Shown: in pieces, positions 14,736 through 63,819 of the stretch | Position numbering within the stretch: position 1 is the stretch's first letter | Layout: every line of letters starts with the position of its first letter | DNA from: Macrostomum lignano | Lineage: Eukaryota | Length of the DNA: 64,000 nucleotides | Assembly (NCBI GenBank): GCA_002269645.1 | Contig: NIVC01000261.1 | Span: 246,564 to 310,563, forward strand | Direction of reading: 5' to 3' | Position numbers and translations under genes: made by a program | The notes under the pieces: model-generated | What the model was told of the DNA's origin: nothing | What the model saw: the letters and a program-made list of their open reading frames with translations, nothing else | Databases searched by the model: none

Positions 14736-16360
14736 TGAACAAGTTTATGCTTCATTTTTATTCAATCTTAATTCATTCAAAAATCCTCCATTCGTTAATC
14801 AATCGAGAACTGGATAAGAAAATTTACGAATGAATAAAGACTTGCACATATCAAACAAAAGGTCCTATTGCTTGAATATATTTATTTTTACTGATCAATA
14901 TAAAAATATTCATATCTCTCTCAGTCTCTCCTGTTCCCCGGTCTCTCCCAATTTCTTCACGTTTCTTAAAATCTTTCCCAGTCTCTTCTTAATCTCTCTT
15001 AATCTCTCACAAGCTCTCCGCAGTCTCTCTCATTTTTTCAGTTTCTTCTAAACTGTCCCACTATTTCAAGTCTCTGAAAAGTCTCTGGTGTCCTACTTTG
15101 CTGCAAGCTGTATTCAAAGTCTCTATTGCTCTAGCTTTAGACCTGCGACCAATAAGTGGGATCGGCTTAAAGTTCATTAATTTTTTAGAACTTATTTGGC
15201 AATACTTTTAGGTCTGCTAGTTGTGCGTATTTTTGCGAAAATACATGATACAATAAAATCTATCATTGAATCTCCCAAATAGACAAATTTTGTACCAGTT
15301 AACCATGTGTTTTCCAATTTGGTAGGTATTATCTCAATTAGCCAAAATGATTTATCAAAATTACCAACCAAGTTATTATCTTGAATACTATGCTAATTAC
15401 AAAAATGGATTCCTATAGTACTCATAGGGAAGCCGCCTCAAAGCCCAGACTAAAGTGTGCAATGGTGTGCAAGTGTTCCCAGCGCGGGATGCCAGTGGCG
15501 TAACTTGCAGTTGCAATCGGATCGGAGAGAAATGGCTGACTAGATCATGGTCAGGGTGAATACTTTTTAATGTCCAGCAGTATACATGTATACATTAATA
15601 GATATGTAGATAGGTCTTATTATTTGTAAAGTTTTAAAGTTGAGCAAATTTGTTGTTGGATACGTACTATCAATATCCTCGATTTTTACGTTAAGATCTT
15701 ATCGGTTGCTAAATGAATTCCGTCATTTTTTGCGTCGATCCTGTCGCTTTTTAAACAATCATTGAGCAATTTTCGCCTATTTTACCACCATTTAGATCAA
15801 TCTTGGCACCGCTTAGACCCTTGTTGGGACGCCAATTTCTATGCAGCTAAAATATTTAAACAATTTTTTATTACGCATCCTTTTTAGCGCCTGAGCAGTG
15901 TAATTCGTTATCGCAATAACTGGCTAACATCATAACTTGTTCTAATCAACTCTCTTAAGCCATAGGCTAGGGATACAGGAGCATGCAAAGGCTCAGTTTT
16001 GTAATTTTTGCGAGCGTATGTTCAACCGATAACGTTATCAGTTTGACTAAGCCAAAGCTCAAAAGCAGGAGCTAACATTTTTTTAGCGTTAGACAAATAA
16101 AGTTCTCAAAGAAGTTCGGAAAGTTATAGCTCAAAATTTGGCAAAACTGTTTAAATACTATTATAAACATTAATTATCAGTCTCATTTTAGTTTACAGGA
16201 CTATCGATTGCCAAATGTCATGCTAACGACTAAAGTGGTTCTAGTCGCCTTTCTGATCCGGTGAGGCTTGATAAGCTGGAGTGATTTTTGAATCAAGATA
16301 TTTTTCATTCGTAGTATACTTCATTTCAACCAATACCGGTACGCTTAATTAGTTTATATA

Positions 16361-16386
16361 GTAAGTTAGTTAGTTAGTCAGTTAGC

Positions 16387-16470
<84 letters not shown>

Positions 16471-16515
16471 CAGTTAGTTAGATAGTAAGTTAGTTAGTTA
16501 GTTAGTTAGTTAGTC

Positions 16516-16553
<38 letters not shown>

Positions 16554-16573
16554 ATAGTTAGTTAGTTAGTTAG

Positions 16574-16657
<84 letters not shown>

Positions 16658-16685
16658 ATAGTTAGTTAGTTAGTTAGTTAGTCAG
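16361..16685. repeat. (GTTA)n tetranucleotide microsatellite, ~80 units, in intron 1 of copy 2
   Basis: Direct reading; ends at the TCAG acceptor of exon 16686. Confidence 0.97.
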
Positions 16686-17695
16686 TTGGTTGCACGCCAT
16701 CGAAAATGCTTTCCACAGCGGCTGTCTTGGCTTCAATGCGACAGAAAGTCTGTTTGACATCGGTGGAGATGATCTCAACTTTGTCAGTTCGCCAGTGTCA
16801 ATGCAAGACAATTTTCAATTCACTGAGACCGACATCCTCGAGGAGCTGTACAATACGACTCGAGTGACCAAGCGGTCCACTCGATCTAACCTGTGCACCT
16901 ATCAGAGAAGCGAGACGCAATATTATCGATCGTAAGCACGAACACTACTTTGCTTTTCCTACTACTATTTTTTCTAGCCTTTTCACTGACTCTGCTTTCG
17001 TTGCCTTTACACCAAACAGACGGAGCAGGTTGGGGCGGAGGAGGCGGAAGTCTCGAACTATTATAGTTAATTATCAGGACTGCTGTCCCGGTTGGGGTCG
17101 CTACGCTGGAGAGCCGTCCTGTTTACGCGGTGAGTTGCACCAACGAGTAGAATATTCACTTAATTAAAATTAAATATTTACGGTTTTAAGTTTTGGTTTC
17201 GTTCTGAAGACTTTCCTTTACGTCTGTGGCTATCAAAACTTGACCTACATGTACGAGCATTCAACATCAGACGTAAAACTTTCTTGATGACCTTGACCCA
17301 ACCATTAAACAATAATGTTAGGCTTATGTGGGCATCGCTGAGATGTCAAGGGGGTAATTGATATGTTAAGGCTTGTGGGGGGGAATCCTCTATGTAGGGA
17401 TGACAAGAAGAACAATGAGAGATACAATGAGCCAACAACAGGTCAAATATTAACAGAAGTCGTTACTTCGGGGTCAGCGCACTTTCTCACCCCCAACAAC
17501 TCGATTGCAAATTTTGTCACCATTGCCTCGTAACAAAATCAAACTAAGGGAAGAAATCTGGATAAAAAACTGAGGACTGACAAACCGCCGGGTACGAACA
17601 TCAGAGTGGACAACCATCTTCTCCGACCCATCCTTCTGGTCCTTCATTTTCACCCATCTTCAGTCTGGCTCGCCAACGAGATTGCTAAAAACTTT

Positions 17696-35911: not shown

Positions 35912-38159
<2,248 letters not shown>

Positions 38160-38849
38160 TCACGCGCACGCGCAACTGCACAGTGAGAATATGATTCGGA
38201 TTGCAGCCCTTACTCACTGCTAGGGCTGAGCTCTTCTCTTCCCTCTATGCCTAAAAACGGTATAGGGAGTAGCGTGAGCAGCCAGAGAGGGAGGAGGGAG
38301 CAAAGCGAGGAAAAATAAGAAATCCAGATGGCTCCGTTCTCACGGGTGGCCTAGTAAGGCTTATTAAGGTAAGGCTTAGTAGCTCTCTTGGAGTGATTTT
38401 ACGTGGCACTGGCAGACCAGTATATTATATTCTATATGCAATATCCACGTGTCTTTCACTAACAAATGGTTTGGCTAGGAGCAGAAATTAACGGGCAGAG
38501 AGGCGACCCTATATGATAAGTTTCCCTACAGTAATTGGATAGCATCTATTTAAGTCTTGCTCTTGAGCCAGGCCTGGGGTAGGGGTGGGGGCTGCGGTAA
38601 CTGTTTCTTACCAATCAAGCGACTTCCGCAGCCCCGGCCCCTCACCCAGTAGGCAGCAATTTCGAATCCCAAAACACGACAACGGGAGCACGCGTGAAGA
38701 CGCGGAGCATTAAACTTCGTTAAGCAAAATTCTGGAAAGGAAACTCTTCTCTTATTTTTTCTGCGCCCGATTACGATAGTTGGAGGTTTGAGTTTAAAAT
38801 TTTCACTCTGAAAATTCCAGTCAGCACCGATTTCGGCGCTATGGCGCGA

Positions 38850-39965
38850 TTTAAACACAAAATTTGGCGCTGTTTAGACACTAATTTTGGCGCTGTTTAG
38901 ACACTAATTTTGGCGCTGTTTAAACACTAATTTTGGCGCTGTTTAGACACTAATTTTGGCGCTGTTTAGACACTAATTTTAGCGTTGTTTAGACACAAAT
39001 TTTGGCGTTGTTTGGACACAAATTTTGGCGTTGTTTGGACACTAATTTTGACGTTGTTTAAACACTAATTTTAGCGCTGTTTAGACACTAATTTTGGCGC
39101 TGTTTGGACACACATTTTAGCGCTGTTTAGACACTAATTTTGGCGCTGTTTAGACACTAATTCTGGCGCTGTTTAGACACTAATTTTGGCGCTGTTTAGA
39201 CACTAATTTTGGCGCTGTTTAGACACTAATTTTGGCGCTGTTTAGACACTAATTTTGTCGTTGTTTAGACACTAATTTTAGCGCTGTTTAGACACTAATT
39301 TTGGCGTTGTTTAAACACTAATTTTGGCGTTGTTTAAACACTAATTTTGGCGTTGTTTAGACACTAATTTTGGCGATGTTTAAACACTAATTTTGTCGCT
39401 GTTTAGACACTAATTTTGGCGCTGTTTAGACACTAATTTTAGCGTTGTTTAGACACTAATTTTGGCGCTGTTTAGACACTAATTTTAGCGTTGTTTAGAC
39501 ACAAATTTTGGCGTTGTTTGGACACTAATTTTGACGTTGTTTAAACACTAATTTTAGCGCTGTTTAGACACTAATTTTGGCGCTGTTTGGACACACATTT
39601 TAGCGCTGTTTAGACACTAATTTTGGCGCTGTTTAGACACTAATTCTGGCGCTGTTTAGACACTAATTTTGGCGCTGTTTAGACACTAATTTTGGCGCTG
39701 TTTAGACACTAATTTTGGCGCTGTTTAGACACTAATTTTAGCGCTGTTTAGACACTAATTTTGGCGTTGTTTAAACACTAATTTTGGCGTTGTTTAAACA
39801 CTAATTTTGGCGTTGTTTAGACACTAATTTTGGCGATGTTTAAACACTAATTTTGTCGCTGTTTAGACACTAATTTTGGCGCTGTTTAGACACTAATTTT
39901 AGCGTTGTTTAGACACTAATTTTGGCGTTGTTTGGACACTAATTTTGACGTTGTTTAAACACTAA
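38850..39965. repeat. 23-bp minisatellite (TAATTTTGGCGCTGTTTAGACAC), ~48 units with a higher-order repeat; degenerate tail to ~40230
   Basis: Period 23; diagnostic variants recur at 483- and 460-bp offsets. Confidence 0.96.
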
Positions 39966-40964
39966 TTAAGTCGCTTTTTAAACACCGATTTTGGCGCTAT
40001 TTAAACAATGATTGTGAAGATATTTAAACATTGGTTTTTGCGATATTTAAACACAGAATTTGTACACCGATTTTTTTGGTATTTAAACACCAATTTAAAC
40101 ACTGATTCTGTCGCTATTTGTTTAATTTTTGCGCCAAATAAACACTAATTTTGGCCTTGGCCTATTTAAACCCTAGTTTTGGCACTTTCTAAGCACTGAT
40201 TTTTCCCTAGCTAAAACACTGATTTTGGCGTCATTTGAACATGTACATGTATAGTTTTTGCTTCAAATATTGACAAAAATAGTTTCGCTTTCCAGTCTCC
40301 GTAGCATATAAGAGTTTAGGCCCTGGTAACGAATCGACGAAGAGCCAGATGAAGGAAAAGAAACTCTTGGGCCGTGTCTTGTAAGGGGCCACCAGTTATG
40401 GTGGGAATTCCGTCAGCTGTTGTTCCAAGGCCATGTTAGCTTGGGGGCGCTGGAAGAATGGACAGGGGGAAGGCGTAGGAGACAGAAGGAGCTCAGGGAA
40501 GGCTTCTATTCTATCCAACCAAGAATTCTAAGATAATCCCAGCGAACTATACTAGTCCAAGTATTTAACTAATATCCCTTCTAAGCAGCTAAGCTTATCT
40601 GCAATTCTTCTTTACAGTCGATTTCAATACGATTGAGCGATTGAAGAGAAAACCCGATCTGGACTGGAAACCCAGTCGAGTATGTTAGCATTGGAACGCA
40701 TGCATGGGATGGAGGAAGCTGTATAGATGGGGAGAAAGAATGAATCAACAAAAATCCCTGATGGAGCTGCTGGGGATGCTGGGGATGCTAGAGCGATCCC
40801 ACGTGTCGCGGTTCCCACGGTTCTCTCTCTGCATCTGTCCGCCTCCTCCCCTCTCCATCCTGTCCAAGGACAGTTTGACGCAGAACTTGGAGTGAAAAAC
40901 AGTGTATTCACAAGGCTACACTTAGCTTATGGAATGTCACCTCAATTAACCCTTTCAAAACCCC

Positions 40965-41892
40965 ACCAAGGGGCTTTAGCACCAAGGGGCTTTAGCACCA
41001 AGGGGCTTTAGCACCAAGGGGCTTTAGCACCAAGGGGCTTTAGCACCAAGGGGCTTTAGCACCAAGGGGCTTTAGCACCAAGGGGCTTTAGCACCAAGGG
41101 GCTTTAGCACCAAGGGGCTTTAGCACCAAGGGGCTTTAGCACCAAGGGGCTTTAGCACCAAGGGGCTTTAGCACCAAGGGGCTTTAGCACCAAGGGGCTT
41201 TAGCACCAAGGGGCTTTAGCACCAAGGGGCTTTAGCACCAAGGGGCTTTAGCACCAAGGGGCTTTAGCACCAAGGGGCTTTAGCACCAAGGGGCTTTAGC
41301 ACCAAGGGGCTTTAGCACCAAGGGGCTTTAGCACCAAGGGGCTTTAGCACCAAGGGGCTTTAGCACCAAGGGGCTTTAGCACCAAGGGGCTTTAGCACCA
41401 AGGGGCTTTAGCACCAAGGGGCTTTAGCACCAAGGGGCTTTAGCACCAAGGGGCTTTAGCACCAAGGGGCTTTAGCACCAAGGGGCTTTAGCACCAAGGG
41501 GCTTTAGCACCAAGGGGCGCCAGCACCAAGGGGCTTTAGCACCAAGGGGCGCCAGCACCAAGGGGCTTTAGCACCAAGGGGCGCCAGCACCAAGGGGCGC
41601 CAGCACCAAGGGGCGCCAGCACCAAGGGGCGCCAGCACCAAGGGGCGCCAGCACCAAGGGGCGCCAGCACCAAGGGGCGCCAGCACCAAGGGGCGCCAGC
41701 ACCAAGGGGCGCCAGCACCAAGGGGCGCCAGCACCAAGGGGCGCCAGCACCAAGGGACGCCAGCACCAAGGGGCACCAGCACCAAGGGGCGCCAGCACCA
41801 AGGGGCGCCAGCACCAAGGGGCGCCAGCACCAAGGGGCGCCAGCACCAAGGGGCGCCAGCACCAAGGGGCGCCAGCACCAAGGGGCGCCAGC
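40965..41892. repeat. 16-bp minisatellite with two variant domains (ACCAAGGGGCTTTAGC then ACCAAGGGGCGCCAGC)
   Basis: 34 TTT units, an alternating zone at 41509-41572, then ~20 GCC units. Confidence 0.97.
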
Positions 41893-42253
41893 CAATGGGC
41901 GCCGGCACCAAGGACGCCAGAAATATAGCGCTGAGATTTTAGCACCAATTGCATTCCACTTTTCTAATCATTTCTGAACGTAACCTGTTTTTAATTATAA
42001 ACCAATTGTTTATTTGTCAAATTTAAACTCTGAGTTTCCTGCTAGATGTGAAGAAGTTTATTGATAGCTTCAAATAGTTTCTCACTGGCTGAGGCTCCAC
42101 TGACAGTTAAAAAAATTATAAAGATGACAGATAAGTGAAAATATGAGAAAGAGATAATATATCTTTATATCTTATCACCTCTCATAGAGAGCTGATGAGA
42201 GGGGAGAGGAGAGAGGAGAGCTGATGAGAAGAGAGAGGAGAGATGAGAGAGAG

Positions 42254-42775
42254 GGGAGCTGGAAGGAAACGAATTTGATAGAACCGGATAGAGAGAAGGG
42301 AGCTGGAAGGAAACGAACTTTGATAGAACCGGATAGAGAGAAGGGAGCTGGAAGGAAACGAATTTGATAGAACCGGATAGAGAGAAGGGAGCTGGAAGGA
42401 AACGAATTTGATAGAACCGGATAGAGAGAAGGGAGCTGGAAGGAAACGAAATTTGATAGAACCGGATAGAGAGAAGGGAGCTGGAAGGAAACGAACTTTG
42501 ATAGAACCGGATAGAGAGAAGGGAGCTGGAAGGAAACGAAATTTGATAGAACCGGATAGAGAGAAGGGAGCTGGAAGGAAACGAACTTTGATAGAACCGG
42601 ATAGAGAGAAGGGAGCTGGAAGGAAACGAAATTTGATAGAACCGGATAGAGAGAAGGGAGCTGGAAGGAAACGAACTTTGATCGAACCGGATAGAGAGAA
42701 GGGAGCTGGAAGGAAACGAATTTGATAGAACCGGATAGAGAGAAGGGAGCTGGAAGGAGACGAACTTTGATAGAG
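42254..42775. repeat. 44/45-bp purine-rich minisatellite, ~12 units
   Basis: GGGAGCTGGAAGGAAACGAA(A/C)TTTGATAGAACCGGATAGAGAGAA. Confidence 0.95.
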
Positions 42776-45483: not shown

Positions 45484-45993
45484 TCAGCGGCCCGGTTCCT
45501 GATGACCATCCAGGTGCAGCCAGTGCAGCACCGAGTGGCGGCAGTGCTTGGAACAGACGCAGTCAGGATGCCCATTGTGAATGAGGAAATCGCCCACGCA
45601 GAACGGGTCATTCGAATTAAAGACGTTTCGGCAGAGTCGAGTGCACAGGGAGTTCAGCTTGACCCTCTGCAGGTCTGTTGCGGTTGAGATAACGATTGGT
45701 TATTTATTAGTTGCTTAGTCATCAAGTGTGCGGCTTTTAGGGCCGCTGACCTTTTACCGCCTTGTGGGTTGGCCATCATAGGCGCTAAATGAACGAGAAG
45801 CTTACGATAAATTCATTCCTGGTTGCAACAAAAATAGTTTTTTTTGTTTTAAAACGCGATATATTCGGTAACAATGGACATTGTATAAGCTGAACATACC
45901 CGCTTCTCCGAAAACCCTCCGTTTAGCAGTAGTTTGGCTGCCTGTCACGGCTGCGATTGCGACAATAGCGAGAATTCCAGCTGCCTTTAGCAT
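45484..45993 (-). CDS. Small secreted Cys/His-rich peptide precursor, 103 aa, 3 exons (45993-45900, 45784-45758, 45674-45484)
   Basis: MLKAAGILAIVAIAAVTG signal-like N-terminus. Two GT-AG phase-1 introns (115 and 83 bp) join in frame to ...LCTRLCRNVFNSNDPFCVGDFLIHNGHPDCVCSKHCRHSVLHWLHLDGHQEPGR*. AATAAA ~300 bp downstream. Confidence 0.72.
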
Positions 45994-47620
45994 GATGAAG
46001 CTCCTGTAAAGCTAAGAGCGTGGATGGTTTAATTTTAAATAGACTTAGAAGAAGTAGAATTAGAAGTATAATAGCAGTCCTATCCGAGCAAGACTCATTT
46101 TTAACAACAGCTCTGATTTTTATACTCGAATTTTTGGGTACTTTTCTTTAAAAAATTCGTTTTTGTTAATCTGATTGGATCGCATTAGCCCGGGGTCGCA
46201 TCAAAGGGATTTTATCAAAGACACTAGTCCCAGAGAAGTACTGATTGGCTGGGCGAATCAATGACATGTTAATTTTTACGAGGAATTATTTTGTATATTT
46301 GTGTCAGATAAAAATGATTATTTACACATGTAGCTGCTTTTTGAGGCCCTCTTTGAGGACATGCACTTAAAGTACAATCGGCGGCGGCATATGAAAAATT
46401 AAACTTTGACATCGCATCACTGCATCGCACCGCCTAGAAATCAGTCGGGACCAGCTATGGAATCAGGATTTCTTCCAGAGGAGCGAACGAAGAATTTGCG
46501 AACTCATGAGAGATGACTAGCGAAATAGGGAGAAAAACAGATGAGCCCCCAGTCCCCCCCCATTCTTTAGCTCTTCTGTTTAGCTCAACATTCTGAACGA
46601 GCCTTGGAATCTGAGGAATTGTTATAGGTATTGATTTCAGCTTTACCATTCTGAGATGCTGAGATTTAGAGATTCTGACTAATCCTTCTCACCTAAAAGA
46701 AGAACAGCATTCTTTGCTTTCTGAAGAAAATTTCATATTTACAATTATTGCTCGAGAAATCTTCTTTTGCTACTCGTCAGTAGTCACTACCCTTAACTGT
46801 TTAAAAGCGCTTCAGCAAACACTGGAACGTTTTCGTCGTGTCCACAACGTATGTCCAAGTCGAAGTACTGTAGCAATGGCAGCTACATTCAGTTTACACG
46901 TCCTGACTGCTGATCATTTGAAACTTGCAGTGAACGCACAATATTGTGAAATACGAGCGCAAGTACGCGTGAATTTAAAGGTCAACGTTTTCATTATAAT
47001 TTTAAGCTTCTAATGCAGATAAGTGTGTGTAGGGAACGTGAAAACTAAAGTACTGAAAAATATTCGCGGAAGGGTTGCGCCCACCTTCGGTGATGTCGTC
47101 CGCCTCTTGTACTGTACAGCATTCCTTGTACTGTAGTAGTCCAGAATTATGCTACTCCCGAGTTGCGGTAGTTATCTGGATAGCTCGTCCATCATAATGT
47201 GAATATTTTGCTTTATTTTGCTCATAAATCATTCGTGCAATTTGCGGTTGTTCCACAGCAATTATGAATGCGTCAAGTAGGTGGGAGTTAGGAATATTAC
47301 AAGCTCGACTGTGCGATTAAATTCATTCGAGCTGCGTTGGTATGCGCTAGGAAAATTTATAAGTGTCGAAATTGTGCGAGCTAATCCCATTATGGGTTGG
47401 TAGGCAAGCATCGGAACGCAGATGCACTCCCGTCAGTCTCTCTCCTTTCGTTCGTACATTCAGACGCATGTGCAGAAGGGGATAGGGAAATCCTATATCC
47501 ATCATGTCCCTTGCAGCCACACACTCGTAGCATTGAACCCTGAACTCTCAGATATACATGCAAGCCGATCATATAAGCAGTTGCGCAAACAGCTAAAATA
47601 CCGGACAAAGAAAGCTGCAT

Positions 47621-50600
47621 ATGTCCACTGCTATTCTTGCTACCAAGCACGGAATTCAAGAGCCGAGTATGGAACAGCTGCAGCAGCAGCAGCAGCATGA
47701 TAGGACGCCAAAAGCGAACCAACTGCGCAGGTCTGCTATCGAGTTTCTCGGATACACGACAGCGCACGGCTTGGGAAGATTCGCCAGCCAGTCCAGTGCA
47801 ATCGGCAAGCTGATTTGGATCGGGTTCCTTCTGGGAACCTACTCAGGATTTGCCTATCACCTGTACACTCTCTTTGACAGGTTCGCTCAGGCGCCTGTTC
47901 TCACCACCATGACCATGTCCAGTCTGGGATTCCAGTTCCCGGATGTGTACATCTGCCCCGCCCAGCCAGTCACTATGAGCAGGGCCAGCAAAGAAATTGA
48001 ATCCGTTTACATTAGTTTCAACGCTAGAGACCATGTGAAACCTGAATTCAAAGCTAATTTCTTTCGATTTAATGGAACAAATGACGATTTATATGCGTTG
48101 AGCAAGCCGGCTAGGGCAATACTTTACGTTCTCAAGGCCACGGAGGCCGCTTTCATAGCAAAGTTTCAACTTCCCCAAGATGGTGAGTCATATAGTGCTC
48201 TTTTTCATATTTTGATACTTAAGTCATAAGTGTTTTCTTTGTATTAACTTTTAGAATAATAGCATCAGATTACATATGGTTGCTAAATTTTGCTAGTGGT
48301 GCTATGCTTTGTTACCGTACATGTATATTGATGTTCGGCCTAAAATATTCTCAGGAGAGTTGCAGGCACCATCTGGCGCAACGCCTTTGGCGAATTTTCC
48401 ACATTCCGCAACCAAAGCTGAGGCATCTCTGCACATTCCGCTGACTGTTGAGAACATGCAAGCGCTAATACTGTACGCAGACTGGATGAACAGCAAGCAG
48501 CCTTGACTGTCCAATTGTCGGACAAGTACAATCTCATGGATTTGATATGGATCAGATTTGATATCAGACGAATCGCACCACCCGCCACCTAACTTTCGTG
48601 AAGAAGATACAAATAATTTTTATTGCGCACAGATTCGTGGAGAGTTGGTTATGACAGTTAAAATATGATCGCTGAAAGGATTCAACGTTGATTGCATTGC
48701 AGAAGATGCACTCTTAGACTGTCGAACCAGCTTGTCTGGAGAGGAGTACGCTGGCAATAGAAGTTTCGCGGTGACATACGATCGAGCGCGAATCGATCTA
48801 CAACGCACTGACCGGTCGCTAAAGCCGTACACGACGACCAAGCCGTGCATTCGATGGAGCGAAGCTGCTCGGATGCTGAAAGCTCGAGGCGCAGCAAGCC
48901 TGGGCGACCGGCTGCTGATGCTTAATTACTCTGACAGCGAGTCCCGGTGCCGAGCTCCGGTCCGACTGCCGCTGTCTGAGTTTTTTCCGATTGGCAGCAG
49001 TGAGTGATAAAAAATTATGTTGACTCTGTGAATTTTGCGGATACTTTAACAATTTATCTTCTACTGTAATTGCTCTCGCTGACTCCAGAAGAAACCTTGT
49101 CGGGCAATAAATACGTCGAGTCTAGTCGATTCGTAGTTACGATAAAAATAAGTATTCCAAGCTCAACCGCAGTTAAAATTGCTCGAGCTGTGTTGCTATA
49201 TACTAGGAAAATTTATAATTGTTTATAGCTGTTCGAGCTAAGCCTATTATGGTCTGGTGTGGCAACCACCGAAACGCAGATGCACTTTAGCACTTTCCGT
49301 CTTTCCCTCTATTATCGTTTGTGCATTCAGGCGACTGTGGATGTAGAGGAAGGAGATACGGGATTTACTAATAGCCACATGGCTTCGAGCCTTTTATAGG
49401 TGCATGCCAGCAGTCATCGTTTACTCATCCTCTTGCAGAGAACTGTTGCCAAATATTTTTCTTACCTGTAGTTAATACTAAATCAGCTGATAATTTACCA
49501 TTAGAAATGCATTTAGCCTTGATGATTTGTTAATAAATCTAAACTTTGATTTCTTCTATTAACTTTTGAACACAATATCAGGATCGCTGCTACAACGAGT
49601 AGGTTGTTTTGCAAAAAACTCCAGCACTGTTGAAGAGAACTTCAACAAGACATGTCTCGTACGTGGCCGAATAACTACAGAACTGTGCGCCGACTGCTGC
49701 GATGAGCTCGACTTCACGCACATTGCCCTGCGGGACGGCGAGTGTCACTGCGGCACTTGGAACAATACACAGCAGGGGTTCTGCGACAAATTATCGATTA
49801 ACAGCGTCGCAAGGAAATGCGATTGCGATGTCAATGTTTTTTGTATAAGAGATACCGGTAAGTGAGGGAACAGAACTGCTGCAATTTTAAATGCGCGCAA
49901 ACAATGCGAGCTAGCTTTTTAATCAAGTCGTGCTTCATTTTCAGACTCAAAGCCGCTACGAATCAGCAACTCAAGCGTCCTGACGGCATTATCAAACGGG
50001 CCCTACTGCTTTTTCAAAGACGATTTTGGCAGGCTTGAGGCTGCTTTCTGCAACGTCCCACTCTGCCGTAGGTTTCTAAGGCTTCAATTTTGAACGCTGC
50101 TGTTGTAGAAGGACACCGCACACGCCTTCTGAACTTTTGATTTGCTGATGGGGCCAGTTTCAAACTGTTCTCGGTTCAAATTTGCGATTTGGTAGGACGG
50201 GTTTTCTGAGTGTTGATTCGATGTTAACTGGTCAAAAGCATTGAGTCAAGAGGCTTTAACCGTGAATAAGTGTACAGATGTTAGAAATAGAACTATTTAA
50301 CACAGGCATTAGGTAAGAAGTCCGCGCTAAATTTCTTTCAAGATTACTCTTCAGGAGGCGATCCGTTTCGTCTAAGTTTTTCGTCTAATTTTCGTCGAAA
50401 GTGGTCATTGATAGAGTTCATTTAGATTTCTTTAACGCCCGTAAAGATGCTGACCATACATTCGCTATTGAAACAATTTGAGCAGACGGAATTTTCGGAG
50501 CTTAATAAAAGGCCACGCGATTCGACGGTTGGCGTTCGGCCAGGATTCACGAGTTCCAAATAAATTACCGTGGGTAGAAGTCTAAGCAAGGACCATTAGA

Positions 50601-53600
50601 AGTTACTGTTGTACTTGTATTCAGGCTGTAACACAACTGCTACAACGGTAACTTCTAGTGGCCCTTGAGTCTAAGCTCCAGACTATATATACCTACATGT
50701 TTATACATGCGAATGCATAAGCTACGAGTATAGTCTAGTAATGTACGAACAACGCACTTAATCTACTTAATGACTTGTATGACGACGTCGACTATTAACA
50801 TCGGCTGGCAAACGTCGCAATCTCCGGTTTTGACAGTGTAGTATGTATGAGTAGCGCGTCTAACCGCTGATGCAGACAGCGATTCCTTAATAAACTTAAT
50901 AAAATTTCAGTAACGTTGAGTACTACAACTTCATTTTATAGGCATGAATTCCGGCTATGACTGCATTTTTGGTACAACTGACGATGCAGCTCGGCAGCGA
51001 CAGCAGGCCGTCTACACCGGCTACAGGAATGTGGCGGCCTCGGGAGAGCCCTGCTTGGCCTGGAACCAGATCGTGGAACGAAACAAGCAGAGAAAGCAAA
51101 AAATAGATCCAGTTGGTAAAGTGCATGTACTATGTAGACGTAAAATAATAAAACGAGTTTTACGTGTAAAACCAATACGGTGGTGGTTACTAGTAGAACG
51201 GTGAAGTATTTATTCGTAAGTATTATATTCAATTAAAAAAATTAACGAGATTTTTCGAGGAAAGAAAGTTTTTCGGGAAAATTTATGATAATATTTAAAG
51301 CGCTTTAACAACAAAAACCTGGGCTAAGTTAGCAGTATGGTCTAATAGTTGTCTTGGACAATAAAAAACTAATTGACGAGAAAAAATCATTTATTAGAAT
51401 TTTAGATTATAAGTAGCTATACTTTATAAGTTACACGTATACTTTATATACAAACGATTATACGGGGAAGCAAGTTTCGCTACTACTCGTACAAGTTTAG
51501 AAACATCAGACAAAAACAATTTGTGACTGAATGAGAAACTCTTCTCTAGTAGCAGTAACAACAAAACACAATAACACAATAACGATATAAAAAAAACTGT
51601 GTAGTTGTTGAGTGAAAGTATTTTATTTATTTATATAATCCAGTTGTCCTCCAGCGCTTTTAATATTTAAACAAAATGTCTTTATATTTTAAACTGTCAC
51701 ATTTCAGCCAACTATGACTATAAAATGCGGATTCATTTGGAAACGCCCGACTATGACCGGCTTGAAGGTGCTGACAATTTTTGCAGGCCTGCTCAAATTA
51801 TCCGGGAGTTTGGCTTTTCAGACAGGGTTTATTAGTAAGCTTTGATTGCAGCTATACGCTTAATAGTGCTGCCAATTCAGTAATTATTTAAGTGCCAAAA
51901 CACTTGCAGCCCTAAGTTCTCATATCGAACATTTCAGTCGGAACCCAGATTTGATATCAGACGACGAGGCTCCCTCCTGCGTTTCTGACACCTTCGGAAA
52001 ATCCAACTTGGTAAATTTGGCATTGACCAAGTGCGACATTCCCGCCTGCTGTGAGTTTAGCATTTGCCAGTCAAATAGTCCTAAAAAATATTGTGCCAGT
52101 TTCTGCCTGCATCTGTCTCACTTCTGTCTGAATGTCTGTCTCTCGATTGGCGCCCGCCCCTGTCCTTGGGCCTGTCCCTCTCATCTTAGGCCTGTGATTT
52201 CACAACGCCGAAAACTCTACGAGTATATACGAGACCCTCTAGCTCGTACAAGACCAAATTTGACAACGCCAAATATTTGCATGGTCCTTGTTTTATTAAG
52301 TTTTCTACGATGTGAACTTTCCGTCATATGAATTTTCGGACTTTTAAAGGGTCTTGCATTTGGAGTTTTCAGTGTTGTGAAATTTCGGTCTTATAAAAGG
52401 AACCCATCAGTTCTTTAGTTTGATTTTTTAATAGGAACGTCCCCCTCGCCCCTCCCCTTCTGCTTAGGCCACAATACAATATACTACATGTATTTAGCTT
52501 TAAGATAAGTAGAAGAAATGTCACAGCCAATAAGTGCTACAGTTTTCTAGCTCTTATTGATGTCTTGCAGACACTAAAGTTCCCACCGTGACTGCTGCGA
52601 TCCGGGATGGCATCGGCAGCCACCTGCTGGCCCTGCAGTTCAGCAGCGACCTGAGCTTCACCCTGGTCGAGTGCTCCTTCGGTGGCCAGAGCTGCACTAA
52701 AGACGACTTCCTGAGCGTGTCTCACCCGCAGCTGGGCATGTGTCACCACTTTATGAAGCAGCGGTTCACCCAGAACATGTCCAGCTCGCAGTTGGCGGAC
52801 AGTCAGCTGTCAATCAAATATTTCACGGACTCGACAGACTCGAATGGTGGAACAATACCAGAATTGGACAAGCTGAACCGCATCGTGCACAGGTCCGTCA
52901 GCAATGATGAAAGAAGAATCGCTTTTAAAGTAAGTCCTACAAACAGGGAATGTTTTGAAACTGTTTGTACCATGCCGTTGCGTTGTGTTCTTCTCTCAAG
53001 TTTTCATGTCCTGATTATCATGTCTTAGTTCCTAGTTCTCAACCCCGCGTGTTCAATCTCATTTCTCATTGTTGGTAGAAGCTTTTAATTAATTACCACT
53101 TTATTAGTTCAAACATCTCCTGAATTTTGCAGGCAGTCATAGTCCCAGAAGGCAGCTACCCATGGCCGTCAAAGGGTGTCGATGTTGCCACAGCTCAAAG
53201 CTTGGATATTCAGTTGAGTTTAAAAAAAATTAAGAAGCTATCCACTGCATCGAGGCCCTGTGTTGAGAACACGGAGCCTGTAACTTACAGAATGCTGTCT
53301 TGGAAGCAGGCTAAAACCACGAGTTCTAATGAGTAAGCCTGGAAATATTACTTGGACATAAGTATGATCCTAAATTGCATTATCGTGACTTTCTATTTCA
53401 GGGAAAATATACGTTTACACTTCGTTAAGGCAGCCTCGGAATGGTGGCAAAAAATTGCTGTTCTGCGAGCACAACTTGAAAAACAAAACGCGTTGAGGTG
53501 CGTGGCATACTGTACTCAACATTTTAACCTGTCCAACAGTTTAATCCTACGATATGAAATCTTTTACATTTGACTTTGTAGACCCCTGCAAGCAATGGAT

Positions 53601-56600
53601 TGGCGCTACAATATCCCAAGCAAAGAAGACTACACAAACAAATTTACTGTGCAACATTTCGCTAAGGCATGTAACTGCTTGCCATCATTTCTGCCAATTG
53701 AAGTTGAGTTATTCTCGAACTATACCTTCTGCTTTGACACCAATGACACGGAGACTGTGTCAAGGCTACGGGAATCATGCCACAGAGAGCAGTTATCGAA
53801 GCTGCTGCAGTACCAGTTCGAGGCGGCTAAGAAAGCCTTGTCGCCGTGCGAGGAAACCGACTACGACATGCGGCTTATCTCCTACGCTTGGCCGAATCTA
53901 AGTGGCGCCAAGTCGATGGAGATTCTAAAGAAGCTGGCGCACAATTTTGGCTTAGGAACAGAGTACAGTCGTCTTAGAGGAATAAGCAGCATCTACAGCA
54001 CTTACTGGCGCTCTCTGGTCATGTTGGAAAGCAATCTGACCGAGAGCAACTTGCACGATAGAATTAATTTTGAAAACGAGCTAAAATTTCTTCGAGACCG
54101 ACTGGCTCAACTGACGGTTAAAGGATTGACGTCGTATGGTCAGGAAATTTCGGAAGAGGAGGCCTACCCCGCGAAAAATCTTCTGGCCGATATAGGAGGT
54201 AACTGCGTTTTTTGACTGTATGCTTTTGAATTACTAAAGCCAATCAAGTCTAAGAACCTTACACACCGCGGCAACAGCCACTGCCACGAGAATTGCACCT
54301 AACCCACCCCATTCGCTCAGTCACTGGATGAGGAAGAACTTTTTTAATTTTTTAATTGCACACTAGTTCTCATCTCCTTCTCTCTTACTAATAGTAGGCT
54401 CGTATGTTAATTTAGGATTTTTCTTTATTGATGATTGCTTTTCTGCGTTAAGACTTCGTGTTGAGTCGAAGTGGCCTTTCTTTATTGAGAGGCAGGCCGG
54501 CGAAGCTGGAGGGATGAAAAGCCTCCTCTGCATGTAAAAAGTCTGTTGTCCAGCGCTAGCTTTTCGAAAATGGCTTTGAAACTTGACTCCGCTTGCGAGC
54601 AACACTGACAGTCTCCATGGCGTGTTCTCATGAGTATCTTCTGGGTGAACGGATCTCTGCGTCCATTTACATGTATGTCAAAATTCTTTCGGGCTCGATC
54701 GCCAGTGATTCGAATGCCTCGGCGTTGATGGTATCAAACGTTTCCTTGTCGTCTGCGAAATAGTTGTCGAAGCGGAGCCGATGTGGAGCTCGTCAGCGTG
54801 TGGAATATCGCAGCCTTGCACATACTCGATGTTCAAGAGACGACATAGCCCAGCGCCCAATTCTCGGCGATGTGTGCAAAGCTGTAGAGATGTCACAGCC
54901 AGAAGAGACGACTCAGTGGCTGAAAATCGTGCCTAACGGCCATGAAGGAAGTTTGATTTTTGAGCAATTTGATTTGGCGGCTGACAGTGTCCTCGAAACA
55001 AATATTTCGGGATACCTCTCCTATGTCACTACGCGGCGATTGAGCTCTTTGAGGCATCCTTTCTTAGAGTTAACTCTTTTGATAGGCTATAGGGCTTGCA
55101 CTATATATTGCACTATTGGGACTTCAGCTTTGAGATAATCGAAAGCTGGAGAGCACTCATCGGTCCAGTCAAAGTTGATGTTAGATTTTTGCAGTTAATT
55201 AAGAGGAACAGTCTTTTGAGCGAAGTTCGGAATTAGTCTCCTAAAGCAGTTGACCAGTCCCAAAAGCTGGCGAGCTCAGATTTGTTTGTCGGGGCAGAAA
55301 CGTGTCTGACTTTTTTATACCAGCCGTTCATCTTAGCTAGATTCCGAATTAGAGATCGATCGGGCTTCACCAAGTGACTGCGACGCCATTTTAGTGTTTC
55401 TTTCTGTTTTACATTTGCGTTGAGTTGAAGGCCTTTCTGAATTGAGCATACCCTCTTAGGAAATTCGAAGCTTATTCCTAGTTAAATTCCTAGTCTAACT
55501 GCGAATATTCAAAGTTAATTAAACTACGAATGAGAGAACGATTGTGTCCTAGTAAAAGTGACTGTTTGAATTAATAGCAATTTATCAAAACTATACTTCT
55601 ATTGTTTATTCTTACTATTTTTATGGCAATTTATAAGAAAAATAATTCATTATCTTACTTGAATCTTACTCAATTGCTACATTTATAACTGCCTATTTCG
55701 ATCAATACTACTGAAAAAATAAACTGTGTGCTACTAAACGTAGTAAATAAACACGAGTATGACTCCTAAATGTTGAACTTTGATTCATGCTCACCTGTTT
55801 TAGGGCGTCACAATTTTTCACATTTTTCGATTTATTATCGTATATAGCTATCATTTCTCGCTCCAGAAAGTATAGTATTTCGATAGCTAAGTTTGTCTTC
55901 TGTTTGTCTTCAACTACTTATACGCGCTCGTACTTAATACTTCAACTACCTAACCTGAAGTATTCTATAATAAGCCCGAATTTTCATAAACCCGAAATAT
56001 CACAACTTCGAAAGTTCTAGCAACGTCCAACACTATTTTGGTTTTCGAAGTGATGCTGTTTCGGGTTTATGATAGAAAGCGCTTTTCGAAATTGTGATTT
56101 TTTGTGATTAAAGAGAAAGTCAAAGGGTCTGTCAACTTAAGATCATAAAGCGGAGCCCGAGTAACCTATGTACACAAATGATAGGTCATTCTGCTCACAG
56201 TGACACTAGGAAGATGGGTTTGGCAAAAAAGCGACAGACATTTGACTCGGGAGAACAAACAAGGGGATAATTATTATGTCAACTTAAGCTCATAAAGCAC
56301 CCTTATTATCCCCTTGCTTGTTCTCCCAAGTCCAATTTTGTCGCTTTTACTCGGGCTCCGCTTTAAGAGCTTAAGTTGACAGGCCCTTTCGATCATTCAA
56401 GTTTTCAAGTGCAACTTTTATCGCAATGCTGGACAAGATGAGTGGCCACTTTACTGATTGAGGTTTTTCCAGTCCATCAGTCTACCGATCAAACAGGTAT
56501 TGGAAATCCCGAATACTTTCTGAGAATTTAGTTTTTTGATCATGTATTCATGACAGCGCAAGAACCCCCACAAAAAGTCCCATCTGTCCCTGCTGCATGA

Positions 56601-57337
56601 TCAATACGATCTAGTCCTAGCAGCGTCCAGCTTTATACATCGGAGATGGACAGCTATAGCTATACGCTCGTACTAAGGCACTAGTTGGCAGGTACGTGCA
56701 GGAGCCGCAATTCTAGTCAAAAAAACTGATTTCGAAAGTGCTTCTTCGTTAAGCCTGTTCAGCTTGTGATGGCGGATTAGCATAAATCCCGGGATTTGTT
56801 GTTTTCTACCCTTTCAAATTCTCCCTACTAGTCTCTCGCTCTCCTCTCTTAGCTATTGACACCAATGCAAGGCAATTTGATTCATTTCTGGACTCTGAGG
56901 ACCGAAAAGTTTCCGATCAAAAAAGCTTAAGAAGGCTTCATGATTCGCTTGCTTTATTTTCTATGGTCCAGTGGATTTTATGGCTGTGGCTGCCACTGCA
57001 GTGAATGGGGATCCTCGACGAGAGACTTTCATTATTTCCTGGGGGTCTTTGACAGCCTCAACTTCCACTAGATATGGGTCCCTCATTGGATTTGTGAAGG
57101 GCAGTGCCCCCCATTTTATGAAGGTTTGCACAGTTTAATAAATGCATGTACACCTATTATATAAACTTTCTTTTTTCAGGAGCTCTAGGCCTATGGAGCG
57201 GAATATTTGTTCTGACAATCTGCGAGCTGCTTGAGTTCTTTTACTACATCAGCATCGGCTTGGCGCTGAGTCTGCGACATCGACGCGATTCACTCCGAAG
57301 GGACAGTGTGGCCAGGGAAATTGAGACCCATGCTTAA
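47621..57337 (+). CDS. DEG/ENaC (amiloride-sensitive channel family) subunit with a kringle-WSC-kringle insert, 12 exons, 1,033 aa
   Basis: Exons 47621-48182, 48703-48999, 49582-49857, 49945-50067, 50942-51115, 51708-51834, 51938-52050, 52571-52929, 53133-53332, 53402-53497, 53582-54198, 57180-57337. All phases match; total 3102 nt. Motifs: TTAHG, TM1 IWIGFLL, FPDVYIC, ECSFGGQSC...F...GMC, CNCLP, PCEETDY...AWP, YPAKNLLADIGG|ALGLWSG...LTICE. The exon-2 acceptor is the least certain. Confidence 0.9.
48703..50067 (+). other. Kringle-like domain 1 (exons 2 and 4), interrupted by the WSC exon
   Basis: DC...SGEEYAG...KPCIRW...SRCRAP | GPYCF...AFCNVPLC: the six-Cys kringle pattern. Confidence 0.75.
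49582..49857 (+). other. WSC-like domain on a single phase 1-1 exon (92 codons)
   Basis: VGCF...ITTELCADCC...FTHIALRDGECHCG...C...C...VF matches WSC YxGCY...MTxExCxxxC...YxGLxxGxECxCG. Confidence 0.75.
50942..52050 (+). other. Kringle domain 2 (exons 5-7)
   Basis: YDC...VYTGYRNVAASGEPCLAW...DNFCR...RNPD...APSC...KCDIPAC. Confidence 0.85.
54600..55380 (-). pseudogene. Highly degenerate Gypsy pol fragment (RT connection/RNase H) in the last intron of the channel gene
   Basis: Frameshifted motifs LGLVNCFRRLIPNFAQK, FDWTDECSPAFDYLK, DASKSSIAA, SRTLSAAKSN, SPRIGRWAM, NIEYVQGCDIPHADEL. Confidence 0.75.
56122..56389. mobile_element. MITE / foldback element with 43-bp TIRs, an inner inverted repeat and a central TIR fragment
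   Basis: 56122-56164 versus 56347-56389 (40/43); 56227-56271 versus 56305-56348; central TGTCAACTTAAGCTCATAAAGC at 56277-56298. Confidence 0.85.
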
Positions 57338-60197: not shown

Positions 60198-63100
60198 TCA
60201 GTCTGGTCCGCTAGTAGCTCTCTCATTCCTCAGCTTCATCACCAAATTAACCGGCTGCTGGCGATAACCAACTGCTACCAGATCGTTGATCTCTTCGTGC
60301 TGCCCAAGACTCTTGCAGCAGCAGCAGCAGCAGCGGTCAAAACAGCGTGACAAAGGTGTCGGCCAGCGGCTCTGATAAGCCCCGTAGATTACCGGATTCA
60401 CAGCGCTGGTAGACATGCCGAAAAAGAACACTCCGTTTGAAATCAGTTCCACCGCGTCGTTGTACCGACCTCCGCTAAGCCGGTTAGCGCACGCAAATAT
60501 GTACAGGCCCCAGTAGGGCAGCCAGAGCAGTAGGAATGTCAAAATGATGACGGAGAACATTCGAAAGCTGCGCAGTTTTGCGCGAAGTAAAAATGCCTGA
60601 CGATAGCTGGCGATGAAGTTGCCGGCTTGGTTTAATTGCATCTCGTAGCTCGGCGGCGACTGGGTCTGAAGTTGAGACCGCTGCTGCTGCTGCTGCCGCT
60701 GTTTTGGATGATGATGATTATTTAAGAAGTCGGTGCCGAGTGTCGGCGAGCTGGGTTCGGGCTGCAGCGGCTGCTGCTGCTGTTGCTGTTGGTAACCGTT
60801 CAGACTTTCAGCATCCGTGGCTGAAGTGACGCAGAAGAAAATTAGACTCTCAAGGTGAGATTCTTGGGTTTGACCCGTTTGAGATAGCAATTAGAGTCGG
60901 TCTCACAAAGACTCTCAGGGTGAGATTCTATGGTATGCGATAGCAACTAGAGTCGGTCTCACAAAGAGTCTCAGGGTGAGATTCTAGGGTCTGAGATAGC
61001 AATTAGAGTGTTATTAAACTCTCAGGGTGAGATTCTAGGGTTGGAGATCGGTCAGTCTATAGGGACTGGCTAAATTCTTCCTAATGCTGGCTAGTTGCAG
61101 TCGGAAGATTAAATTTAAAATTTGGAGAAAAATTGCTTTGATAATCAACCTCAGAAAAAATCTCTCATTTGAGGGCTTGATTTATCAAAAATATGAAAAA
61201 ACGGCTTGGAAATGAATTCGATGGTGCTATAGCTGCACAATGAGATTTGACTCATTGAAATTTACATACTCCATTGTTTCCGAGAGTAGATTTTATCACG
61301 AATTTGCTGAAGGCAGCATGCGAGCGTACAAAATGGACATTTGCATTTGCAAACTGGACTGCTTGTTGTAATATTGGAATAAAACACTCTCCTGTCAGGC
61401 ACAGGAGGGTGTTCTACAGGAGGGTGTTACACAGGAGGGTGTTACACAGGAGGGTGTTACACAAAAGGGTGTTGTTACACAGCGATAGGCTATAGTGATT
61501 ATAGTTAAAGAGTCAATGTAAACTAGCTTTCACTAAAAGTGCAAAGAAAGCTTTGAAGTTGTACAATCTATTCAAAAAGTCGTATAGAGGTTATAACCTA
61601 CATTGCAGAGTCAAAATACATGTAATTCGATCCCCATAGCAGAATCCATCCACTTAATGAAAGGATTAGCTAGACTCGAATTACACATAGGCAACAAGTC
61701 CATAGTTTCAATGCGAACGGAAGTGAGCTTATAAGATAAAGCTTATAATTATTATATTATTATTATTTTGGTGAAGAGCGGTTGAAACTGCATATTTAAA
61801 GATTACAAGTTCCTCTCTGGTTAAGTTCATTATATATACGCGCTCGTAGGTATATTTCCACCATTCCGCTATCTCTCATCTCTGCCTCTCTCATCTCTGC
61901 CTCTCTCATCCATCCTCTCTCATCTCTGCCTCTCTCATCTCTGCCTCTCTCATCCATCCTCTCTCATCTCTGCCTCTCTCATCTCTGCCTCTCTCATCCA
62001 TCCTCTCTCATCTCTGCCTCTCTCATCTCTGCCTCTCTCATCCATCCTCTCTCATCTCTGCCTCTCTCATCTCTGCCTCTCTCATCCATCCTCTCTCATC
62101 TCTGCCTCTCTCATCTCTGCCTCTCTCATCCATCCTCTCTCATCTCTGCCTCTCTCATCTCTCCCTCTCTCATCCATCCTCTCTCATCTCTGCCTCTCTC
62201 ATCTCTGCCTCTCTCATCTCTGCCTCTCTCATCCATCCTCTCTCATCTCTGCCTCTCTCATCTCTGCCTCTCTCATCCATCCTCTCTCATCTCTGCCTCT
62301 CTCATCTCTGCCTCTCTCATCCATCCTCTCTCATCTCTGCCTCTCTCATCTCTCCCTCTCTCATCCATCCTCTCTCATCTCTGCCTCTCTCATCTCTGCC
62401 TCTCTCATCCATCCTCTCTCATCTCTGCCTCTCTCATCTCTGCCTCTCTCATCCATCCTCTCTCATCTCTGCCTCTCTCATCTCTCCTCTCTCATCCATC
62501 CTCTCTCATCTCTGCCTCTCTCATCTCTGCCTCTCTCATCTCCCCTCCTCATCTCTGCCTCTCTCATCCAATCCTCTCTCATCTCTGCCTTTCATCTCTG
62601 CCTCTCTCATCCATCCTCTCTCATCTCTGCCTCTCTCATCTCTGCCTCTCCATCTCTGCCTCTCTCATCCATCCTCTCTCATCTCTGCCTCTCTCATCTC
62701 TGCCTCTCTCATCCATCCTCTCTCATCTCTGCCTCTCTCATCTCTGCCTCTCTCATCCATCCTCTCTCATCTCTGCCTCTCTCATCTCTGCCTCTCTCAT
62801 CCATCCTCTCTCATCTCTGCCTCTCTCATCTCTGCCTCTCTCATCCATCCTCTCTCATCTCTGCCTCTCTCATCTCTCCTCTCTCATCCATCCTCTCTCA
62901 TCTCTGCCTCTCTCATCTCTGCCTCTCTCATCTCCGCCTCTCTCATCTCTGCCTCTCTCATCCAATCCTCTCTCATCTCTGCCTTTCATCTCTGCCTCTC
63001 TCATCCATCCTCTCTCATCTCTGCCTCTCTCATCTCTGCCTCTCTCATCTCTGCCTCTCTCATCCATCCTCTCTCATCTCTGCCTCTCTCATCTCTGCCT

Positions 63101-63819
63101 CTCTCATCTCCGCCTCTCTCATCTCTGCCTCTCTCATCCAATCCTCTCTCATCTCTGCCTTTCATCTCTGCCTCTCTCATCCATCCTCTCTCATCTCTGC
63201 CTCTCTCATCTCTGCCTCTCTCATCTCTGCCTCTCTCATCTCTGCCTCTCTCATCTCTGCCTCTCTCATCTCTGCCTCTCTCATCCATCCTCTCTCATCT
63301 CTGCCTCTCTCATCTCTGCCTCTCTCATCCATCCTCTCTCATCTCTGCCTCTCTCATCTCTCCTCTCTCATCTCTGCCTCTCTCATCTCTGCCTCTCTCA
63401 TCTGCCCCTCTCTGCCCCTCTCATCTCTGCCTCTCTCATATCTGCCCCTCTCATATCTGCTCCTCTGCCTTATATTCTAACTCGTTCTCAGTCTCTGTAT
63501 CTCTGATTGAGTCAGGAGTATAAGTACAAATGCCATTAATTAATGCTATTAACAATCGATCAATATTTTCCATAGCTGTTTACTCACCGCCCAGTTCGCG
63601 AGATTTCCCCGAGATCCTGCTAATAATGAGTCCGTAAGCTGTGCTCAAGCAGCACAGTGGGCCAAGAAACAGACTGGCAATGTTAAACAGCATGTAGGCC
63701 AGCACCAGCTTGTCCATGTGAGCTGTCAGGTGGTCTGTGCTAGTGGGCTGCATATCCAGCGAGACGCATTGGTAGAAATCTTCTCTCCATGGGCCTCGGG
63801 CCAGTCCAAAGAAGAATAG
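60198..63819 (-). CDS. Rhodopsin-family neuropeptide GPCR, GnRH/corazonin/AKH receptor type; last two exons (63819-63588, 60820-60198), 5' part beyond window
   Basis: ECL2 LARGPWREDFYQCV; TM5 AYMLF...FLGPL...AYGLI; RAKLRSFRM; TM6 FLLLWLPYW; TM7 FFFGMSTSAVNPVIYG. A phase-1 GT-AG intron joins ELG|ATD. Confidence 0.88.
60838..61048. repeat. 51-56-bp degenerate tandem repeat (~4 units) with a TCTCAGGGTGAGA palindromic core
   Basis: Direct reading; abuts the GPCR last-exon acceptor. Confidence 0.85.
61400..61480. repeat. 15-bp repeat ACAGGAGGGTGTTAC, ~5 units
   Basis: Direct reading. Confidence 0.9.
61872..63470. repeat. Pyrimidine-rich satellite, 15+15+14-bp units forming a 44-bp higher-order repeat, in the GPCR intron
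   Basis: A=CTCTCTCATCTCTGC, B=CTCTCTCATCCATC, mostly A-A-B. Confidence 0.97.

Follow-up and report, generated by a model that had tools for sequence, protein, structure and literature searches.

In a 64,000-nucleotide (nt) stretch of the Macrostomum lignano genome (contig NIVC01000261.1 of assembly GCA_002269645.1, positions 246,564 to 310,563 of the forward strand; hereafter the window), a gene for an ion channel of the degenerin/epithelial sodium channel (DEG/ENaC) family carries an exon, 49582-49857, that encodes a WSC domain. This exon is probably included as a rule, and the domain probably sits inside the loop between the third and fourth cysteines (Cys3 and Cys4) of a diverged kringle, within an extracellular block of the channel. 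The kringle in question (kringle 1, K1) is divided between two exons, K1a before the WSC exon and K1b after it, and is followed by a second kringle (K2) that occupies the exons K2a, K2b and K2c. The nested kringle(WSC) architecture appeared to be genuine, unusual and apparently undescribed. The domains, the channel family and the shuffling mechanism are all known ones, and the arrangement is restricted to one flatworm lineage.

In the gene model of the window, 12 exons on the plus strand between 47621 and 57337 were joined into an open reading frame of 1033 codons. The assembled protein was 99% identical to two M. lignano database proteins, P0001 and P0002, and matched the Pfam family ASC (PF00858) with an E value of 3.1e-40 (cut-off 23.6 bits), the best stretch being residues 800-1001. 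The marks of a DEG/ENaC channel were all present, with the first transmembrane segment (TM1) and an H-G motif in exon 1, the second transmembrane segment (TM2) in the last exon, and a large extracellular loop; the motif G-x-x-G-x-S-x-L-T-x-x-E was also found. The best solved relatives of the channel without its insert were the FaNaC, ASIC and ENaC structures, among which FaNaC had the closest core. The introns of the ENaC core were in phases 0, 2, 2 and 1. All 12 N-x-S/T sequons for N-glycosylation in the protein, including three in the WSC exon, were located between the two transmembrane segments, which fits an extracellular location of the kringle/WSC block.

The block inserted into this channel, kringle 1 with the WSC domain in it and kringle 2 behind it, consisted of six exons (48703-52050; 1110 nt, 370 codons). 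It was placed in the extracellular loop, after the TM1-proximal sequence and before the conserved C-x-F-x-G-x-x-C motif, and was both entered and left in phase 1. Across the block the intron phases read 1, 1, 1, 1, 1, 2, 1, so that of the seven introns at its borders and within it, six are in phase 1. Runs of phase-1 introns are a signature of exon-shuffled class 1-1 modules (PMC8001218), and the run seen here agrees with the original prediction, made from the DNA letters of the window, which had taken the 1-1 exons for such modules. The exons 48703-48999, 49582-49857 and 49945-50067 each had AG directly before them and GT(A/G)(A/G)GT directly after them, and all three had a length that is a multiple of three, phase 1 on both sides and no stop codon in frame. 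K1a contained exactly three cysteines (in DC, PC and RC) and K1b another three (in YC, FC and LC). When position 48999 was joined to position 49945, the sequence read on in frame as ...EFFPIGS-N-SKPLRISN.... The exon coordinates, the symmetric phase of the WSC exon, the in-frame skip and the division of the kringle cysteines into three and three had all been given exactly in that prediction. Removal of the whole insert (48703-52050) would also keep the ENaC frame.

A profile built from five paralogous exons, including that of the window, matched the WSC domain of Kremen1 (E 1e-8 over 82 positions) and the fungal WSC domain 7pz2 (E 4.5e-7), and essentially nothing else in the PDB. Four of the five exons matched Pfam WSC (PF01822), with a best E value of 2.6e-12, and a Pfam WSC match is precomputed in the database for proteins P0003-P0008. 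The disulfides of the Kremen1 WSC domain are C122-C186, C147-C167, C151-C169 and C190-C198 (PMC5014086). In the paralogues, the WSC exons retained all eight canonical cysteines and had two family-specific ones in addition, ten in total. Judged by its sequence, the window exon is a diverged member of the WSC family with an open frame and a conserved length. The description of the exon as WSC-like, which had been made earlier, holds at the level of the family; the window copy taken alone is too diverged for Pfam.

Kringle 1 was compared with 42 reference kringles cut from multi-kringle proteins of the ostracod Darwinula that are annotated as kringle-containing; these proteins came from an exhaustive profile search of 1.84 billion representative proteins with the whole block as the query. 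After removal of the WSC domain, K1 aligned to the reference kringles in hhalign at 97.7% (E 1.3e-12), a match that took in the whole template of 85 columns and all six cysteines. The native K1 reached 92.4%, and the K1a profile alone 88.4% (E 2.8e-6). With a custom kringle hidden Markov model (HMM), K1 scored 28.4 bits without the WSC domain and 21.0 bits in its native form, and none of 2000 shuffled sequences equalled the real score. The match consisted of three collinear pieces at HMM positions 1-16, 19-59 and 61-86, and the WSC domain was located between positions 59 and 61, directly after “CR.P”. The halves were also recognized separately, K1a with 14.2 bits and K1b with 18.1 bits, and neither score was reached by any of 1000 shuffles. 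The motifs C-R-x-x-L-S-G-E-E-Y-x-G, P-C-I-R-W, S-R-C-R-A-P, G-P-Y-C-F-F and F-C-N-V-P-L-C were identified in K1, and its spacing of four between Cys5 and Cys6 was that of 40 of 40 reference kringles. Among the 17 PDB matches of the whole-K1 profile listed at E<=10, nine were kringles; the best of them, the kringles of plasminogen, Kremen1, neurotrypsin, apo(a) and ROR1, aligned at K1b with E values of 0.25-3. Because the flanking exons align end to end with the kringle profile once the WSC domain is removed, the location of the WSC insert between Cys3 and Cys4 of kringle 1 is well supported. The insertion into the C3-C4 loop that had been predicted is thus borne out at the sequence level, and K1 itself classifies as a kringle-type domain that is strongly derived even without its insert.

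The second kringle was recognized by ordinary tests. It matched Pfam Kringle (PF00051) with 18.9 bits (E 0.002), and with 29.7 bits (E 8e-7, profile positions 7-79) when a 17-residue loop was removed. In the paralogues, K2 was matched in all six cases with E values of 0.002 or better, all of the scores being under the gathering score of 34.3 bits. The PDB matches of the K2 profile were kringles, with ROR1 the best (E 6.7e-4) and prothrombin, HGF and tPA also found, and hhalign against the 42 reference kringles gave 98.4% (E 7.4e-15). The spacings in K2 were 29 between Cys1 and Cys2 and 30 between Cys3 and Cys4.

The arrangement was also found outside the window gene. The layout in which one WSC exon stands between K1a and K1b recurred, phases included, at the loci L001 (protein P0004) and L002 (protein P0008), in which the WSC exon is located at 3992-4279 and 7630-7941, respectively. 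The phase pattern 1, 1, 1, 1, 1, 2, 1 was identical in the three loci, including the phase-2 intron of kringle 2. At least three paralogues had the same exons and intron phases at 24-63% identity in the segments of the insert. K1 was the best-conserved part of the insert (33-63%), and the WSC domain showed 24-38%. The six cysteines of K1 and the motifs around them were invariant in five paralogues, down to 33% identity. Since the same layout stands at paralogous loci, the nesting predates the expansion of the family, and it is a conserved family trait and not a one-off event. Among the best 150 matches in the 1.84 billion representative proteins, all of the proteins that combine the WSC domain or the block with an ENaC core were from M. 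lignano.

The models of the family in UniProt differed at the connection between the WSC domain and the kringle. P0006 had a shortened K1b, P0007 and P0010 had none, and P0003 carried extra sequence before the WSC domain; these differences may be prediction errors or real variation in the connection. A second copy or allele of the window gene, L003 (NIVC01000649.1), was compared over positions 45621-54485 of the window. From 45621 to 50067 the two sequences did not differ, even in the introns, and from 50068 onward the divergence was 1-2%. The change resembles a boundary of recombination or gene conversion and falls in the intron that follows K1b. One base is missing from the L003 copy at window position 53222 (exon 53133-53332), which causes a frameshift, and because of this frameshift the database protein P0002 stops early at 726 residues. 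The window copy is intact.

Several observations weigh against a WSC domain nested in a kringle. The reference kringles were chosen among the matches to a profile that contained K1 and K2, and the scores against them may therefore be somewhat flattered. Pfam Kringle did not match K1 of the window, either with or without the WSC domain, and matched K1 in two of five paralogues with an E value of 0.04 at best. In the PDB, the whole-K1 profile reached only E 0.25, and only with its C-terminal part, and the K1a profile had no match. The alignment of K1 with K2 in hhalign gave 40% and covered the C-terminal end only. The spacing between Cys1 and Cys2 of K1 was 41, compared with 21 in all of the references, and the loop between Cys3 and Cys4 had 129 residues, or 37 without the WSC domain, compared with 10-16. 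The AlphaFold2 models, computed for the segment of the window and P0002 and then for the more canonical segment of P0008 from alignments of five to six paralogues, had mean predicted local distance difference test scores (pLDDT) of 46.3 and 43.3. In these low-confidence models two helices were predicted between Cys2 and Cys3 of K1, and a Foldseek search with the first of them found no match below E 1.7. The WSC exon of the window itself had no Pfam WSC match at E<=1 or at E<=10. It retained seven of the eight canonical cysteines, with Cys7 replaced by Ser (“CDKLS”), and gained two cysteines near its C-terminal end (“KCDCD” and “VFC”), which brought the total to 11, an odd number. That the block would give the channel an extracellular tether or a ligand-recognition module, and could thereby influence gating, is purely our inference. 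With an odd count, one cysteine of the window WSC domain may be free, or its disulfides may be rewired.

Whether the two halves of K1 form a single fold was considered with Kremen1 as the reference, in which the kringle disulfides pair 1-6, 2-4 and 3-5 and the WSC sheet has the strand order beta1-beta5-beta3-beta4-beta2 with its first and last strands adjacent (PMC5014086). Because these two strands are neighbours, a WSC domain could enter and leave through one loop. The canonical pairing would link K1a to K1b and staple both halves around the WSC domain, and since K1a and K1b hold three cysteines each and the WSC exons of the paralogues ten, a complete pairing would need bridges between K1a and K1b. 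It is likely, as inferred from these features, that K1a and K1b fold as one kringle that spans the WSC domain. An arrangement like beads on a string, in which the two kringle-descended halves no longer fold together and a half-kringle, the WSC domain and a remnant act as separate segments or linkers, would be in keeping with the strong derivation of K1 (no Pfam match, long loops and predicted helices), with the structure models, in which no confident kringle was seen, and with the linkers of 16 and 18 residues on either side of the WSC domain, which could be spacers. However, it is unlikely, as the paralogues show no change in the six kringle cysteines and the motifs beside them, K1 is the most conserved segment of the insert, and the full-length collinear profile match takes in both halves. 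Each half also has an odd number of cysteines, and the canonical kringle disulfides all bridge the halves.

The original prediction had further suggested that the WSC exon might be an alternatively spliced switch, the skipping of which restores a contiguous kringle. On this reading, splicing would toggle the ectodomain between a WSC-bearing and a plain-kringle form. The exon has properties that would suit a regulated cassette: it is symmetric (phase 1-1, 276 nt) and can be skipped in frame, and the pyrimidine content of its acceptor is 0.53, the lowest among the 11 acceptors of the gene (0.58-0.74 in the others). In addition, K2a is followed at once by the next ENaC exon in the model P0001, which thus omits K2b and K2c (240 nt, in frame), other exons of the same insert. 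However, nearly all exons of the insert are symmetric, so that the symmetry is not specific to this one, and the donor matches the consensus at six of six positions; the splice sites of the exon are not markedly weak. RNA sequencing (RNA-seq) data and transcriptome assemblies underlie the GenBank annotation of Mlig_3_7 (PMC5730564), in which the models for the window gene and three paralogues include the WSC exon with these junctions. The exon stands between K1a and K1b in each of the five models that extend across this region (P0001-P0005, derived from transcripts or from prediction), and three further models that are broken at K1b still carry the WSC domain. Paralogues without the exon, with which a comparison had been proposed, were not seen among the database models, nor was any such model of the window gene itself. 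No second copy of the WSC exon, and no WSC exon that might be used in mutual exclusion with it, was found when the window was searched. Skipping would leave a Cys3-Cys4 loop of 37 residues and not the 10-16 of the reference kringles, contrary to the contiguous kringle that had been expected, and the cysteine framework of the WSC domain has been kept in the paralogues at 24-38% identity. With the exon present in all spanning models, its layout fixed before the paralogues diverged and its splice sites not markedly weak, the switch is unsupported, and we regard it as quite improbable. The last explanation, that the WSC exon is foreign to the gene as part of a nested gene, a pseudo-exon or an error of gene prediction, could appeal to the several UniProt models of the family that are faulty (truncations, fusions and retained sequence). 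It is hardly credible, because an open frame and consensus splice sites link ENaC exon 1, the insert and the ENaC core, the transcript-derived models have the same junctions, and the same structure is present at three loci.

The Cys3-Cys4 loop of kringle 2 is also long, and an intron in phase 2 lies in it 16-17 residues after Cys3. In all three loci, the introns that flank the WSC exon in K1 and the loop intron of K2 are at nearly the same place, in phase 1 and phase 2, respectively. It is plausible that the WSC exon was dropped into an ancestral intron shared by both kringles, but since the K1 and K2 loop introns differ in phase, such a simple insertion is not established. Exon shuffling of class 1-1 modules would have brought in the block, and the WSC domain within it, at a time before the paralogues separated.

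Exons of the window gene, with positions counted in the window
Feature	Position	Strand	Basis
Exon 1: start codon, cytoplasmic N-terminus with “TTAHGLGR”, TM1 and first extracellular segment; ends in phase 1	47621..48182	+	99% identical to P0001/P0002
K1a: N-terminal part of kringle 1 (Cys1-Cys3) and 16-residue conserved linker RAPVRLPLSEFFPIGS; phase 1-1, 297 nt	48703..48999	+	kringle HMM, hhalign
WSC exon: diverged WSC domain of 92 codons with 11 Cys and 3 N-glycosylation sequons; 276 nt, phase 1-1	49582..49857	+	family profile against Kremen1 WSC
K1b: 18-residue linker and C-terminal part of kringle 1 (GPYC-FF...FC-NVPL-C, Cys4-Cys6); phase 1-1, 123 nt	49945..50067	+	kringle HMM
K2a: first exon of kringle 2 (Cys1, Cys2); phase 1-1	50942..51115	+	Pfam Kringle E 0.002; K2 profile against PDB kringles
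K2b: middle kringle 2 exon (Cys3 and a loop extension of 17 residues); entered in phase 1, left in phase 2	51708..51834	+	Pfam Kringle after loop removal
K2c: final kringle 2 exon (RNPD..., Cys4-Cys6); entered in phase 2, left in phase 1	51938..52050	+	hhalign of K2 profile
DEG/ENaC core exon with the conserved “C-x-F-x-G-x-x-C ... G-x-C” region, 3' of the insert	52571..52929	+	aligns to FaNaC structure 7yvb
DEG/ENaC core exon	53133..53332	+	
DEG/ENaC core exon	53402..53497	+	
DEG/ENaC core exon: cysteine-rich thumb-like region up to “...LLADIGG”	53582..54198	+	Pfam ASC
Last exon: TM2 (ALGLWSGIFVLTICELLEF...), C-terminus and stop codon (57335-57337)	57180..57337	+	aligns to TM2 of FaNaC, ASIC and ENaC structures

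Some other features of the window were recorded. A dispersed repeat of about 180 nt (72% identity) was present just upstream of the start codon (47295-47472) and again in the intron between K1a and the WSC exon (49153-49339). Many long tandem arrays were located at 10927-12114, 13991-14565, 16359-16691, 36519-36770, 38842-40007, 40964-41886, 42246-42774 and 61872-63460; their units were 4 to 45 nt long and repeated up to about 109 times, and several of the arrays produced long spurious open frames on both strands. On the minus strand, 60201-60890 contained an open frame of 230 codons, the sequence of which resembled the C-terminal portion of a seven-transmembrane receptor with a tail rich in glutamine behind it.

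The stretch of the kringle that is replaced by the WSC domain carries the acidic residues of the ligand pocket in lysine-binding kringles. Kringle 1 would act as a scaffold that presents a glycan- or protein-binding WSC surface at the position of this pocket. A subfamily of Macrostomum DEG/ENaC channels with a Kremen-like unit, in which a kringle scaffold holds a WSC domain stapled into the loop of its ligand pocket and, together with a second kringle, serves as a tether to glycans or the extracellular matrix, or as a ligand sensor, that controls gating, is a possibility that we consider doubtful. If it were true, a sodium channel would here be coupled to its surroundings in a novel manner, and the kringle would be the first on record to host another domain. 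For protein evolution, the gene would be an example in which exon shuffling placed one small disulfide-rich module in the loop of another and the result was kept through the expansion of a gene family, which suggests that the rule by which modules go between domains has viable exceptions. For protein engineering, the Cys3-Cys4 loop of the kringle is marked as one that may tolerate a guest of 90 residues. For channel biology, the genes represent a lineage-specific DEG/ENaC subfamily with recognizable binding modules in the region that tunes gating in its relatives, and thereby a concrete handle on what these flatworm channels sense. The nested kringle(WSC) finding has no bearing on a long-standing open question.

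Among known systems, the canonical kringles of plasminogen, apo(a), prothrombin, HGF, ROR1/2 and the Darwinula multi-kringle proteins have in common with K1 the six cysteines, a profile match over the full domain, and the motifs C..G..Y.G, C..W, CR.P, GP[WY]C[FY] and C.[VI]P.C. The lysine-binding kringles among them have an acidic “NPD” loop, whereas K1 has the linkers to the WSC domain instead. The block and most of its single exons are symmetric 1-1, like the class 1-1 shuffling modules described by Patthy, but such modules are usually added between domains, whereas the WSC domain of the window gene is within the loop of another small disulfide-rich module. Nested extracellular domains are known from the laminin L4 domain inside an LE (EGF-like) module and from the inserted (I) domains of integrins, in which a guest domain is likewise held in a loop of the parent with neighbouring entry and exit points; the folds of parent and guest in these cases differ from kringle and WSC. 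To our knowledge, a kringle as the parent of a nested domain has not been reported before, and literature searches for a kringle hosting another domain found none. Searches of the literature for an ENaC or degenerin with a kringle or WSC domain, and for the Mlig gene identifiers, returned nothing relevant. The outer variable part of the extracellular domain carries lineage-specific additions in other DEG/ENaC channels. The nematode degenerins such as MEC-4, with their extra cysteine-rich extracellular regions, resemble the window channel in having two transmembrane segments, a large loop and lineage-specific outer additions, but the addition in the window channel is a 370-residue block of recognizable mobile modules (kringle, WSC, kringle).

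The closest comparison is with Kremen1/2, in which a kringle and a WSC domain also occur side by side on a cell-surface protein; the WSC domain of Kremen1 is the best solved match to the family of the window WSC exon. The kringle and WSC domains of Kremen1 pack tightly and jointly form the face that binds Dkk (PMC5014086). Elsewhere, WSC domains have been associated with carbohydrate binding and with stress sensing at the cell surface (PMC9024836). Kremen1/2 is a single-pass receptor with kringle, WSC and CUB domains in tandem, whereas in the window gene the WSC domain lies inside the kringle, the Pfam scan of the assembled protein gave no match to a CUB domain, and the block is carried by a channel with two transmembrane segments.

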